The notes under the pieces were generated by a model that made no database searches, was not told the origin of the DNA, and was given only the letters and a program-made list of their open reading frames with translations. A stretch of 64,000 nucleotides of DNA, taken from contig NW_005434667.1 of assembly GCF_000315625.1 (NCBI RefSeq), positions 735,061 to 799,060 of the forward strand, written 5' to 3'. Source of the DNA: Guillardia theta CCMP2712. Taxonomy: Eukaryota; Protista; Cryptophyta. Every line of letters begins with the position of its first letter. Position 1 is the stretch's first letter. Below are positions 32,301 through 38,333 of the stretch, in pieces. The translations under genes and the position numbers were made by a program.

Positions 32301-34154
32301 TCCTCTCAATGCATTAGCCAAGAAACACGCGCCATTGTTTGAGATTCGGTTGTTGGAAAGATTCAACTCCTCCAAGTAACAAGTGTGGAGGATTTGAGAC
32401 AAGTACTCCACCCCTCGATCTCCAAGATGATTCGAAGACATGTCGAGGTGCTTCAACGGATGATTGTCTAGTGCAATTCCCAACGCTCTTCCAACGCCAT
32501 GGGTCAAGCTAGTCTGAGACAGATTCAGACTCTCAATTCTTCTGTTGGCAGCCAATGCATCCAATAATCCTGGCGTATCTTCTTTGTGACTAACGCAACC
32601 TGAATCCGTGATCGGGTTGTGGGACAAGTCGATTCTTGTCAAGACGTTGGATCTCATAATTGCTGCACTCACTGCCTGTGTCTGGGTTGCAGTGACCCCT
32701 ACGCCTTGTAACGCGAGAGTCTCTTTGCCGCTTTGCAGATCATGCAATACAGGATAAATCGGGCGGATTCCCAGAGTCATGCAACATTTCAAATAAGTTG
32801 CAACTCCATCAGAATTATGTTGGTAGTACTTCTCATCATAGGTAGCAACATGTCGCAACACTCCATTCCAATCTCTGATCCCTCTGATCTTCCTGGAATC
32901 ATCAAGCAGCGGGACCTCATGCAATCGACGGCGAGAAGGACTGTTTTGACTGTCAAACGACGAGTCTGTAGATGAGTATTGAGAGTTCAAATACCCTATC
33001 AGAGCGTCTTGATCAAAAGATAAGTTAGATGGCGTCCCTTCTGCTATCGTTACGCTGAGATTTAACAGGGGGCGGAGCAATATTGGATTCATTTGGATGA
33101 TGCGATAGATGGATGCTTCTGGTATTTGCAGGATTGTTGTATCGCCAATGCATTTCAGCTGACAGTCATTTCTAGTATCATTACTAACTATCGGATTCCA
33201 GATCAAGCTTTTCTCTGTAAATACCTTACCAGGCACATTATCCAGCATGAGATGCATTTCTCCGCTAAGAACCTATCAATCATTAGAAATCCAGATCAAG
33301 ATAAGAACAATGAAACCAAGATCAGAAATCCTGTTGTGTCGGAAAAAACAGTTTCATCACCCAATGTTCTGTATCGAGACTCGCTTGCAATCATTTGAAT
33401 ATGGTCCCGATCCCATTCTGCAAAGCACTGATGGTTCACCAAAGCCTGAACTACACCAAAACATCACAACTCGTTTGCCTGTGTCGACACATGTCTACCT
33501 TCGGTGGAGTGCTCGGATGAATCATCATCGATTTCCTGATTCTTCTTTTGTTGATCAGCTTGAACTTTGAGGAGATATCTCAGCATCTCCAGGTTCTGCC
33601 GTTCTTTAGCTTCTTGAATTGCATCAATGCTCATTTTGTTTCGGATTCGTAAAGAAGCTCCGGCAACGAGCAGAGATTTTGCAATGTCCACATGACCCAG
33701 ACTGCTGGCAAGAATCAAAGCAGTATTTCCGTTCTGATCAGTGTCGTCGAGCACATGCCTCCTGGCGTTTCTATCTTGCATTCTGTCCAATGCATACTGT
33801 AGAATATCTCCCCGGCAATACTCCACACATACCATCAAAAAGCTCTTTCCTTGCTCGTTGCGGATTCTACAGATATCTTCCATGGTCCCAACCTTGAGCG
33901 TTTCGAACAGGTATTGTAAGACATCATCAGACCCCTGCTCCACCGCGGCGAGCAGACATTTCCTGTTCTCCGACTGCCTGGTACAGATTTCGCTGCTGAG
34001 CGGGCAGTTGCATGACATCAGTGTTTTTGCCTCCCGGCTTCGAGCCGCCCAGCCTATCTACCTCAAGTTAGCTGCTGCAGGTGCTGAGCTCCTCCCTGCC
34101 CTTCATTTTCCCCTGTCCGCCGTCCTCTCCCTCCTGTGCTGCTCTTGCTTCCAT
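29313..34154 (-). CDS. Large ankyrin + degenerate cNMP-binding + RNI-like LRR protein (ends uncertain)
   Basis: ANK: DQNGNTALILASSLGHVDIAKSLLVAGA. cNMP-like: CFAEWDRDHIQMIASES...DTTILQIP. LRR: LDMSSNHLGDRG, LNLSNNRISNNGA, LDLSWNHI. Long C-terminal part continues through short exons. Confidence 0.7.
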
Positions 34155-34317
34155 GCCGTACGGTCAGGCACTAGCTACCCACGGCCCGACATGCACCGCC
34201 CCGCTAAAGTCACGGTGGTAAAGTCATGGCCCAAGTTGGCCGGGCAGTTCTTTGAAACTTTGAAACGTTGAAACTTTGATTCCAAACTTTTAACGTCACA
34301 AGTTCGATCGAATCCAA

Positions 34318-36629
34318 CACGGGGGTGGAACTGCTATATTCGATCTGACAGACGGGCCAACCCCTAGTGTGGGAATTAACTGGTACAAATATTTAGTTAA
34401 ATACCCCCCCTCCTTTCCTCATCGCGCCTCCATGCAGAGCGTTCGGGGCACTATGGCGGGGGATTTAGGGGGTGCTGCATGCCATGGCAGGGTGTCACGA
34501 GAAAATTCAAATCAAATTTTTGGCGGGCAAAGCTATGTTGTCCTACACCATGGGCAGGCCGAGGCCTCCAGCGAAGAAAATATGCTCATCATGCCACAGA
34601 CGACGAGAAATGACCAGCATTCGAAAGTGGCATGGTGTGTCTATGTGCACAACTTGTGTTGCAAGGTTGAAAAAACACAAGGATTGCAATGATCTTGAGC
34701 AGATCTTGCTCTCTCAATGGGATGATGCCTTGGTTTTCAAGCTGTTGGATTTCTTGCAATGCCATGGCCATGCAACTTTATCTGTGGAGTGTGAAGACGA
34801 GAATCTTTTAGTTTCAGCGACCCATTACCTCAAGTGGAGTCTTCGTTCTGTATCCTTGTATGAAGTCCAGAACAAACTAAAGGTCCTCGGAGATGTCTAT
34901 GGGCCTACATCAGAAGGATTTTCGAGATGTTTTCTCCAGCACTACATGCAGGTTTTCGAACAACAAGCATCTGGCAAATCACATGGAGGCACAAAGGCCA
35001 TTTATGAGCACTTGAATCGACTTCGTACACGTATTGGCAACATTCACAGGAAGAATCGAAACCTTCTTTCTCGCATGGAAGAATGGTCTAGTGCTCACTT
35101 CGAGAATTTGAATTCATTGCAAACTACTATACACGATTACTTTGTGAAGTAAGTCTGAGATGTTGCTTTCTTTCCATGCCAGTGACCTGACGATCATTGT
35201 ACAGGTATGCAAGAATGTCGGATGAACATGTTGACACAAGTGAGAGTCTTCCAAACAAGCATGCCAAGGCGCAATCCGAACTGTTCATTCAGACAGTCCT
35301 TGAAACTTTTAGAACCCTTGACAGCCACACCCGATGTGACATGATTAGAAGGATTTTGAGTGAACACGACTCTCTGTGTCAAACACATGACAAGAATACA
35401 GAGCATGAGGTATCTGCGATATGTAAATTCGAAAATGCTGTTTCAAATCTGCATGCTGCTGGATTGCCGGATATACTTTCGGAGTTAGTAATCTTTGCCA
35501 GAAACGACATCCAAGCTTTCAAAAGCACACATAGAATCATGCCTTACCTCGTCATGGATTGGTGTCATCAGAGCTTCAGAGCGAAAGATTCGAGGGGCAT
35601 GAGATTCTCTCCGGAGGTTTTGAAAAAAGAGAGATACGTATTGTATCCACAATCGGTGGATATCATGCTGAAGATGTTCAGTGACAAGGCCATCAGTCTA
35701 CTAAAGGCAGAAGGACATGAAGCGACAGCAAGAATGGCAGAGGCTATGTCTGGCCTGCACAAAGCATTCGATGAAAGAGGGCTGAAAGTTTCAGAGAGGA
35801 TACGTCTCGTTCAAGAGGGTCGAAAATGGCTATTGGAAGGCATCAACTGGACCAGTGTCAGCCAAAAACATGTCAAGGGACTATCATCTGTAACATTTGA
35901 AGGCTTCATACTTGCAATTGATACTCATCTGCAAGTACAACAGTATGTGAGGGATAAGAATCATGCGCTGGGTGATAGAGACTATGACTTCAATTCACGA
36001 ACTCTCTGCACGGATAGTGTAGAGAATCTGTGGTCCTTGATCGGCCATCTGAACAAGAAGGATTTTCTGAGAAAATTCAATCAGGCATGCATAGAATTAT
36101 CTAAAAAGGTGGATCCAAACCTGCCTTTTGTATACGAGCATTCGAAGAAGCGAATTGTCCTGAGCAAACCGCACGACCGTGAAGCTTTCAATGCACGGGA
36201 TGGATCTGATAATGATGTGGAGCCACACAATAGTACGCAGAAGAACAATCGAAAGCGAGTATATGCTAAATCAGGGCAATGGGATGAAGGATTAACAGGT
36301 AATATGCAACGGTTCCGGGGATTGCGTAGCATTGCTGGCTGCAAGTAGAAAAAAGAGAGATACATATTGTGGAAAATATTAAACACTGCTACGATGCAAT
36401 TCAAATGATTGATACCATGATATAGATTTTACAATTTCCTGATAGGCTATGGTGGTTTCACGATTGTCATCATTGCACAGGCTGAGTAAATCATCCTTAA
36501 ACCTGGTCGCCGCCTTGCTGCCATTGCGATTTCCTGCAAACTCACCCACCCCCTCCTGAAAAGGTACCCCCAAAATATCATACAAAAATACCGGTACTAG
36601 ACCCTTTTATTGGGAGTTCCTCCCCCGTG
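34318..36629. mobile_element. Class II (TIR) DNA transposon, 2312 bp, P-element-like
   Basis: Left TIR CACGGGGGTGGAACT (34318-34332); right TIR AGTTCCTCCCCCGTG (36615-36629), 14/15 match; perfect flanking 9-bp direct repeat CGAATCCAA (34309-34317 and 36630-36638); contains a transposase-like gene. Confidence 0.9.
34550..36348 (+). CDS. Transposase-derived protein (580 aa after one intron), N-terminal C2C2 zinc finger, P-superfamily-like C-terminal half
   Basis: MGRPR...CSSC...CTTC; GT-AG intron 35149-35204 joins the two ORFs in frame; SRGMRFSPEV, PQSV...FS, AFDERGL, TDSVENLWS (candidate third catalytic residue E). Confidence 0.7.
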
Positions 36630-36848
36630 CGAATCCAAATGATTATTCCATGGTTCAGGCATCATCCGCGTCTCCACTCCAAGGCCCCTTGTATCATGTG
36701 CGCGCAGGAGCAACGATGGCAGGGGCGCCGCTGGAGGGAGAGCGGAGAGGGAGGGAGGAAGAAAGAGAGGAGGAATGATGATATGGAGGGAGGGAGGTAA
36801 TCCAACGGATTGATGTCGCTGCCGACCTCAAGGAGTTGCCACATCCCC

Positions 36849-38333
36849 ATGCTGAGGGACTTGCTCCTCCTCACTCTAGCGGCGAATGCGATCGCGTCAC
36901 ATTCGACGTCGGTTGCTAAGATGCAACCAAGCTCTCTGGCTAGAGACAGAAGAATGATGCCGAATGGGCTCGAAAGTAATACTGTCGGAGACGCAAACAC
37001 CTCGCCTTTCATCGAAGGATTGAAGAACAGCTTGGCATCGGGACTGGCTTCTGCTGCAGGAAAGGTAAGTAGATGAAAGAGTTGCTCGCTTCCCCTTCCC
37101 CTGGTCCCATCATCACTGATTCGAGATACTTGAAAGACATTGTTGCATCCCTTTGACGTCATCAAGACTATTGAGCAAAGAAGCCATGAGAAGCTGGTGT
37201 TACACGGCCCTGTGCTCACTGTGTTGGTGATTCGTGCTCTTAAACAGGGAGTATGGGAGGCTGGTAGACGCGTTGTGAAGGAAAGCGGATTCTGTTCTCT
37301 GTTTACGAGGTCGTTGTTTGCATCTTGCTGCGAGTGTTCTTGTGATCATATCGACAGGGGTCTCGATGTGACACTGATAGGGTCTGTCCCCTCGACGGCT
37401 GTCTATTTTGGGGTTTATCAATTCTTGAAACGGAAGTTTACCCAGCAACTTGGTCTGGAGTACAAGTTGACAGCAGTTGCCTTGAGCGCATCCACTGCAA
37501 ACTTCATTGCAGCCTTCTTCAGGGTGCCAACGGAGATCGTCAAGCAGCGAGTGCAAGCTGGGATGTACCCAGATGCAACCTCTGCACTGAAGCTGTGAGT
37601 AGACATGTTCTGTATCGGAGGGGCGTGATTGAGTACAGAATCTTTGCCGATGGAGGTTTTCTGGCGTTTTTCGAATTGCGCTCTGTGATGGTGCAAGTTT
37701 TTCGTGATATTCCTTATGCCGTTGTGATGCTTCTAACCTACGAGGTAAACATTTCTTGGAGCAAATGTGTTCTGATAAGCATGCAGATCCTGCATAGCCT
37801 TTTCAGAACAAATGTTTTCGGTAGCAGCAGAGGTGTTGTACACCGAGTATGACTTGGGTGGTAGAAACGGAAGCAAAGCAAGGGAGGGGGGACGATAGCA
37901 ATCTTGCGGCTAAAACAGCAACAGCAAGCGTGAAGGTAGTGCCATTTTGATCGTGACCAGAGCAATCTGATCCTTGGTAGGGTCTCTGGATCGGCGCGAC
38001 TGCAGGAGCTCTTGGAGCCCTGGTGACAACGCCGTTAGATGTGGTCAAGACACGATGGTTGGTAGACCGCAAGCAGTATCGGTAGCTCAACCTGATTTCT
38101 GATTTTTACTTTTGACGTCAACTTGATAGAGGATTGGTGGACGTCATCGTACGAACATGGTTACACGAAGGTCCTGCCGCTTTCTTCAAGGGGGTGATGT
38201 GGACTTCGTGGTGCATGCACTATCTCTGATCTTGAACCAGGCTGTTCCACGTGTAGCTCAGAAAATTCCCTCTAGTTCCATATTCTTCCTCCTTTACGAG
38301 CTCTTCAGAACCATTTTTGGTGTGAAGCGATGA
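36849..38333 (+). CDS. Mitochondrial carrier family (SLC25) protein, SAM-carrier-like, with signal-peptide-like leader
   Basis: Three Px[D/E]xxK motifs (PFDVIKT, PTEIVKQ, PLDVVKTR), RDIPY, FFKG..PR; leader MLRDLLLLTLAANAIA. Confidence 0.85.

Follow-up and report, generated by a model that had tools for sequence, protein, structure and literature searches.

Structure of the element at the locus

The window analysed here is a stretch of 64,000 nucleotides (nt) of the Guillardia theta CCMP2712 genome (contig NW_005434667.1, positions 735,061 to 799,060; G000:C7:735061-799060), and the genome searched with it comprised 87 Mb in 669 contigs. Between an ankyrin-repeat gene on the minus strand, which starts at 34018 on the left, and a mitochondrial-carrier gene on the plus strand on the right, which showed a Pfam match within its open reading frame (ORF) at 37140-37598, the window carries a transposable element of 2,312 bp (34318-36629, plus strand). 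The two flanking genes are divergently oriented and the insertion site is intergenic. This element is very probably non-autonomous and derived by internal deletion from a member of a young cut-and-paste family, whose full-length enzyme, encoded by an element of 4,036 bp, is predicted to be P-like.

The element is bordered by two identical copies of a 9-bp target site duplication (TSD), CGAATCCAA, at 34309-34317 and 36630-36638 (no strand assigned). Directly inside them lie terminal inverted repeats (TIRs) of 15 nt each, the 5' arm CACGGGGGTGGAACT at 34318-34332 and the 3' arm AGTTCCTCCCCCGTG at 36615-36629 (both plus strand), which are complementary at 14 of 15 positions and give the element the termini CACGG..CCGTG. 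The same 15 nt as in the 5' arm terminate all three subfamilies of the family, designated A, B and C. The lone mismatch (T/A, position 9) is common to all subfamily-A copies, indicating that it is a family trait and not a sign of decay. The 5' subterminal region and leader (34333-34549, plus strand) are conserved among the subfamilies and differ in sequence from the 3' end, where the untranslated and subterminal region occupies 36350-36614 (plus strand). Motifs that are likely transposase-binding sites were observed in the subterminal regions (34318-34440 and 36507-36629; L033, L036), for example CGGGCCAACC and AGTTAAATACCCC in the 5' region and GCAGGAAATCGCAATGGC in the 3' region.

A single gene of two predicted exons is carried on the plus strand. 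Exon 1 (34550-35148; 199 codons plus 2 nt) encodes a zinc finger with four cysteines (C4), a helical domain and long C-terminal helices. It is followed by a 56-nt intron of the GT..AG type (35149-35204), found at the same position in subfamily B and in the full-length subfamily-A copy on contig C3, and by exon 2 of the deleted copy (35205-36349; 380 codons and a stop codon at 36347-36349). The frame starts with ATG at 34550, leaves exon 1 at GTAAGT (35149), resumes after TACAG directly before 35205 and ends with TAG, giving 580 codons without stops. The first-pass annotation, made from the sequence of the window, had described the 15-bp TIRs, the perfect TSD and the spliced, stop-free frame of 580 amino acids (aa), and all of these are present.

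An in-frame TAA at 35150-35152 spans the exon-intron boundary, and an unspliced mRNA would yield a 200-aa protein consisting of the zinc finger and the helical region. The P element makes a repressor by intron retention, and the unspliced 200-aa form recalls such a repressor.

Internal deletion of the window copy

When the genome was searched with the window copy, the only full-length match was the window copy itself. A full-length reference copy of 4,036 bp with its own 9-bp TSD, CCGACCCCC, was located at G000:C3:360938-364973 (L031:501-4536). Positions 1-1306 of the window element match this copy at 99.5% and positions 1328-2312 at 98.7%, an identity that agrees with the young insertion proposed in the first-pass annotation. 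Between element positions 1306 and 1328, other copies hold about 1.75 kb that the window copy lacks. Exon 2 of the C3 copy remains open for 956 codons past the splice site, so that the native protein would comprise approximately 1,156 aa.

At the deletion junction (35623-35646, plus strand), 577 codons of the full-length copy, from SFAST... through ...GTAD, are replaced by eight codons (KKERYVLY). About 21 of these 24 nt are filler. A template for the filler could be observed just past the stop codon (36348-36370, plus strand), with 22 of 23 nt matching in the window copy and no mismatch in C68 and C18. Gap repair that is interrupted after excision and switches its template typically leaves such templated filler where sequence was deleted, as known for P, Ac/Ds and Mu, and we infer that the deletion in the window copy arose by gap repair.

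The window product lacks residues 147-723 of exon 2 (numbered as in the full-length copy), including D382, D410, D458 and H674. What it still has is the zinc finger, 146 residues at the start of exon 2, the end portion of the insertion domain, E849 and the tail. The remaining C-terminal portion of the insertion domain, from QSVDIMLKMFS onward to TDSVENLWS, is encoded at 35647-36036 (plus strand), with the glutamate equivalent to E531 of the P element at codon 36022-36024. The 580-aa ORF is an in-frame fusion resulting from an internal deletion of about 1.73 kb, by which most of the RNase H core was lost. As the FDG aspartate (D458) and the H674 motif, of the D..HLLKN.R type, are lost, the 580-aa product cannot function as a transposase. 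A complete family transposase is not encoded by the window copy, which could move only with an enzyme supplied in trans. The proposal that the 580-aa ORF is the transposase of the element is not supported, as 99%-identical copies carry 577 more codons.

Family members and mobility

The terminus pattern occurred 41 times in the genome and not once as the reversed control, indicating that it is not due to chance. Collection of further copies with their TSD lengths, which had been suggested as a check, revealed perfect 9-bp TSDs in all seven copies with both flanks unambiguous, i.e. the window copy and six others representing three subfamilies (C3, C83, C20, C172, C19 and C80); the TSD reading was ambiguous for the C86 copy. 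Intact 4,036-bp copies were found once in subfamily A (C3) and once in subfamily B (C86, 80% identical). Three copies are 5'-truncated (C18, C68 and C67), and at least six more carry internal deletions with differing breakpoints (C19, C11, C64, C106, C71 and C357). The deletion derivatives other than the window copy are out of frame. Subfamily C consists of four copies of exactly 3,972 bp each, for example L036:1214-5185 with the TSD GGTCTGCTG; compared with the window copy, its exon 1 is 34% identical by alignment, with 37% given by the genome search, and its exon 2 is 58% identical.

Two internally deleted subfamily-B copies of 3,314 bp, G000:C172:35019-38332 (L023/L030) and G000:C20:640212-643525 (L034), are 100% identical and share one common internal deletion, while their flanks are unrelated and their 9-bp TSDs, GGCAGGCGG and GCACTGGCC, differ. 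The identity of the two copies at unrelated sites is direct evidence that this deletion derivative was moved very recently by an enzyme supplied in trans. Mobilisation of the window copy itself in trans may be expected as well. The family is transcribed: GUITHDRAFT_113559 of Guillardia theta CCMP2712 showed 99% identity and a Guillardia MMETSP transcript product 98% identity.

Other arrangements were also seen in the genome. A 424-bp stretch, G000:C11:1091652-1092075, has a family terminus at each end, the two being inverted relative to each other, and is of the size of a miniature inverted-repeat transposable element (MITE). In the 5'-truncated C18 copy (L032, G000:C18:304194-308891), the sequence upstream of element position 343 adjoins unrelated coding-like sequence. 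A six-frame search of the genome with PF21788, which models the P-type insertion domain, gave a sole match, with an E-value of 0.1 and one internal stop, at L037 (G000:C32:155512-155796), outside the Guillardia family.

The in-frame deletion product could also be read as a family repressor resembling the KP or type II forms, which would bind the element ends via its zinc finger or poison transposase multimers. Internally deleted P elements provide a precedent (PMC7776569), the frame is preserved over the junction, and besides the helical domain and the conserved zinc finger the product still has, at residues 148-198, long helices that could form multimers. We nevertheless consider this function unlikely, since the product derives from a single copy with no detectable amplification or selection, no transcript of the window copy is known, other deletion derivatives are out of frame, and one in three deletions would be in frame by chance.

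The N-terminal zinc finger

The codons of the CxxC-x17-CxxC zinc finger extend from C12 to C36 (34583-34657, plus strand). The motif reported in the first-pass annotation is present as C12, C15, C33 and C36. All three subfamilies conserve these cysteines, the spacer being 17 residues long in A and B and 19 in C, although the subfamilies are no more than 34-65% identical. Exon 1 gave no Pfam match to THAP even at an E-value of 10 and no match to any other Pfam family; together with the conservation of the C4 motif in three subfamilies, this bears out the description of the finger as non-THAP. A THAP (C2CH) domain was likewise found in none of the 17 relatives scanned. An ESM Atlas search with exon 1 gave scores of at most 0.84 and was uninformative. 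The THAP domain is typical of the P superfamily, and it is the catalytic core that defines the superfamily.

Relatives outside Guillardia

A word-based homologue search yielded Guillardia proteins and one marginal match alone. A profile of four Guillardia sequences, run against 1.84 billion representatives, gave 117 matches with two conserved blocks; the nearest relatives outside Guillardia had E-values of 1e-30 to 1e-8. The closest relatives came from marine metagenomes and carry a ComEA-like helix-hairpin-helix (HHH_3) domain. More distant ones, from animals and metagenomes (P0017, P0020, P0028, P0038 and others), have a YqaJ domain fused to a P-like core. In some relatives the N-terminal domain of the P-type RNase H, PF21787, was detected with a score that passes its cut-off, and it was the only transposase Pfam family seen among them. 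A profile built from the YqaJ-type relatives matched lambda exonucleases and not P transposase, and was of no aid in placing the first catalytic aspartate.

Relationship of the full-length protein to P transposase

An alignment of 61 sequences (A2) had the consensus ...SD.DR...PVAY...FDGQ...D..HLL.N.R...QS...A...FS...E.FF. When the A2 profile was compared with the Protein Data Bank (PDB), one significant family was obtained, the Drosophila P transposase (6p5a_A, E 6.1e-6), which upholds the suggestion of a divergent P-related family. Homology to P and THAP9 transposases is indicated at the level of the profile, and by relatives that pass PF21787, and the Guillardia sequences themselves gave no direct match. 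In the alignment, H674, K677 and R680 of the Guillardia protein pair with H342, K345 and R348 of P transposase, and QSVDIMLKMFS pairs with P residues 399-410. A weak second stretch pairs E849 in VENLW with E531 in VEHFF, the latter being a catalytic residue of P transposase (PMC7776569). Two motifs on which the original superfamily call had been based, QSV..FS and TDSVENLWS, therefore align with P residues 399-410 and with the region of the catalytic E531. H674 is invariant across the 61 relatives and E849 is conserved in 98% of them; D458 of the FDG motif, also 98% conserved, corresponds by its offset to P D303.

P transposase was also the top fold match of the predicted structure, 13 Z units above Mutator-like element (MULE), hAT and Transib/RAG-like structures, and the alignment runs through the insertion domain. 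The modelled RNase H core is interrupted by an alpha-helical insertion domain and is closest to that of P transposase. The comparison with P and Mutator that had been advised thus placed P transposase first, with no MULE-type structure among the fold matches. The TSD length and the CA..TG termini also conform to the superfamily, in which TSDs measure 7-8 bp (9 bp in Drosophila buzzatii). No NKxD motif for the guanosine triphosphate (GTP) cofactor could be seen in the aligned Guillardia stretch, and without a counterpart of the P NKSD motif (376-379) the sequence lends no support to GTP dependence.

These results support assignment of the full-length protein to the P superfamily and suggest that it may catalyse transposition in the manner of the P element. 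We would class the family as a divergent variant of this superfamily that lacks THAP. A published description of a P-like element of Guillardia was not found in the literature, Repbase and Dfam lying outside the scope of that search.

Another superfamily with a split RNase H domain or a 9-bp TSD would be required if the resemblance to P were convergent or an artefact of the model. A MULE would fit by its TSD length of 9-11 bp, but neither a MULE Pfam match nor a MULE-type fold match was obtained. The features of hAT elements (8-bp TSD, C-terminal dimerisation domain, Hermes-like fold) and of Transib/RAG1-like elements (5-bp TSD, RAG1-like core) were not found either. We regard an origin in any of these groups as very improbable, because P transposase scores 13 Z units higher than any of them with the alignment extending through the insertion domain, is the sole significant PDB sequence match of the family profile, and is represented in the relatives by the only transposase Pfam family detected, and because the TSD differs in length from those of Transib (5 bp) and hAT (8 bp).

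Genomic setting

The insertion had been placed in a divergent promoter. This is plausible, as the flanking genes are indeed divergent, and the promoter itself is a putative one read from gene orientation. The guanine-cytosine (GC) content of the element is 0.41-0.47; the claim that it is lower than in the flanks holds against the adjoining 500 bp on either side (0.54-0.55) and fails against the wider neighbourhood (0.42-0.50). Three tandem 8-bp units, TTGAAAC(T/G), were observed at 34252-34279, about 40 bp upstream of the insertion site and between the ankyrin and carrier genes; they may be a promoter element.

Proposed history of the window copy

The full-length element comprises 4,036 bp with 15-bp TIRs, asymmetric subterminal regions and one two-exon gene. 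In the encoded protein, which has about 1,156 aa, a C4 zinc finger and a helical region precede a predicted catalytic domain of the RNase H type, interrupted like that of P transposase by an alpha-helical insertion domain. Integration with a 9-bp stagger would create the 9-bp TSD. A full-length copy was probably inserted between the ankyrin and carrier genes and would have lost its interior afterwards, either when gap repair following excision was interrupted or in the course of copying, with 21-24 nt of filler, templated by the element's own 3' region, left for 577 codons. Alternatively, an already deleted element may have been inserted at this site. With both ends intact, the window copy should still be movable by the transposase of full-length copies, such as that on contig C3.

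Several points weigh against the interpretation of the window element as a deleted copy of a mobile family with a P-like enzyme. The splice between exons 1 and 2 is a predicted one; no transcript across the junction was found, and the MMETSP protein P0002 begins within exon 2 and is uninformative in this respect. Mobility of the family is read from genome sequence, and no excision, transposition or empty site was observed. Pfam searches with both window exons and with full-length exon 2 gave matches at chance level only. Full-length exon 2 (phmmer) and a Guillardia-only profile found no match among PDB sequences, and in six-frame searches of the genome PF21787 gave no match at all and PF21788 none in the family. 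The connection to P would accordingly be carried by the predicted structure and by a profile widened with distant relatives. That structure is poorly modelled over the first 400 residues of exon 2. The first catalytic aspartate could not be placed, while the second aspartate and the glutamate were located. One candidate, D382 (QDEL), lies at the offset of P D230, yet subfamily C, which is apparently active, has asparagine there, and a helix is modelled at this position; the other, D410, is conserved but maps to approximately P residue 257, according to the Pfam match of the relatives and to structural offsets.

That the 2.3-kb element is complete and autonomous, with the 580-aa protein as a compact novel P-like transposase, is hardly credible: intact ends, a perfect TSD and an open spliced frame would suit it, but the window copy alone has such a structure, 99%-identical copies carry the 577 additional codons exactly at a junction that bears templated filler, the missing part holds the conserved D458 and H674, and the prior for an in-frame junction is one in three.

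Implications

For annotation, the gene model in the window represents a transposon remnant and neither a host gene nor a working transposase, the functional enzyme being encoded elsewhere, for example on contig C3. Situated between two divergently oriented host genes, the element may alter the expression of both. The family extends P-type transposition to a cryptophyte, with a different DNA-binding head, and the lack of sequence evidence for a GTP switch bears on the generality of the GTP requirement of P transposase. As the family looks active now, it could become a tool for insertional mutagenesis or transgenesis in Guillardia.

A wider, tentative proposal, which we regard as possible and somewhat doubtful, is that the Guillardia elements, together with the marine-protist proteins and the animal proteins fused to YqaJ, represent a branch of the P superfamily that is deep and uncatalogued. 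In this branch, THAP would have been swapped for other DNA-binding modules, the GTP-specificity motif lost and a large extra insertion acquired in the catalytic domain; the Guillardia subfamilies would be active now, because 100% identical copies occur at different sites. If this were true, they would constitute a natural transposon system for a cryptophyte alga.

Comparison with known P elements and related proteins

Animal YqaJ proteins, such as KAK7507914.1 of the snail Batillaria attramentaria, and the metagenome HHH_3 proteins share with the Guillardia protein the blocks SD.DR, FDGQ, D..HLL.N.R, QS...A...FS and E.FF. Unlike the Guillardia protein, these relatives, known from their protein sequences, have either a YqaJ domain of the lambda-exonuclease type or a helix-hairpin-helix domain.

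Compared with the P element (PDB 6p5a/6pe2), THAP9 and zebrafish Pdre, the Guillardia protein has a CxxC-x17-CxxC finger where the THAP domain stands, and it is not detected by the Pfam models of the P family. Relative to P transposase, approximately 200 extra residues are present between the FDG aspartate (D458) and the HLLKN motif. The NKSD guanine-specificity motif of P, which lies in an insertion with respect to the family profile, is not conserved, and a cysteine occupies the position of P D339. The Guillardia element also differs from the P element in its TSD (9 bp compared with 8), its TIRs (15 bp compared with 31) and the length of its protein (about 1,156 aa compared with 751).

The 9-bp TSD, which had at first been taken as a departure from the P superfamily, loses this significance, as the P element of D. 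buzzatii and the MITE BuT5 make TSDs of 8-9 bp (PMC3698922). This system resembles that of Guillardia in being a divergent P lineage with 9-bp TSDs and mobilised non-autonomous derivatives (PMC3698922). It differs in belonging to an insect and in having a THAP-bearing transposase of 822 aa, 3-bp TIRs and seven exons (PMC3698922), and between the two families no sequence similarity could be detected beyond the superfamily level.
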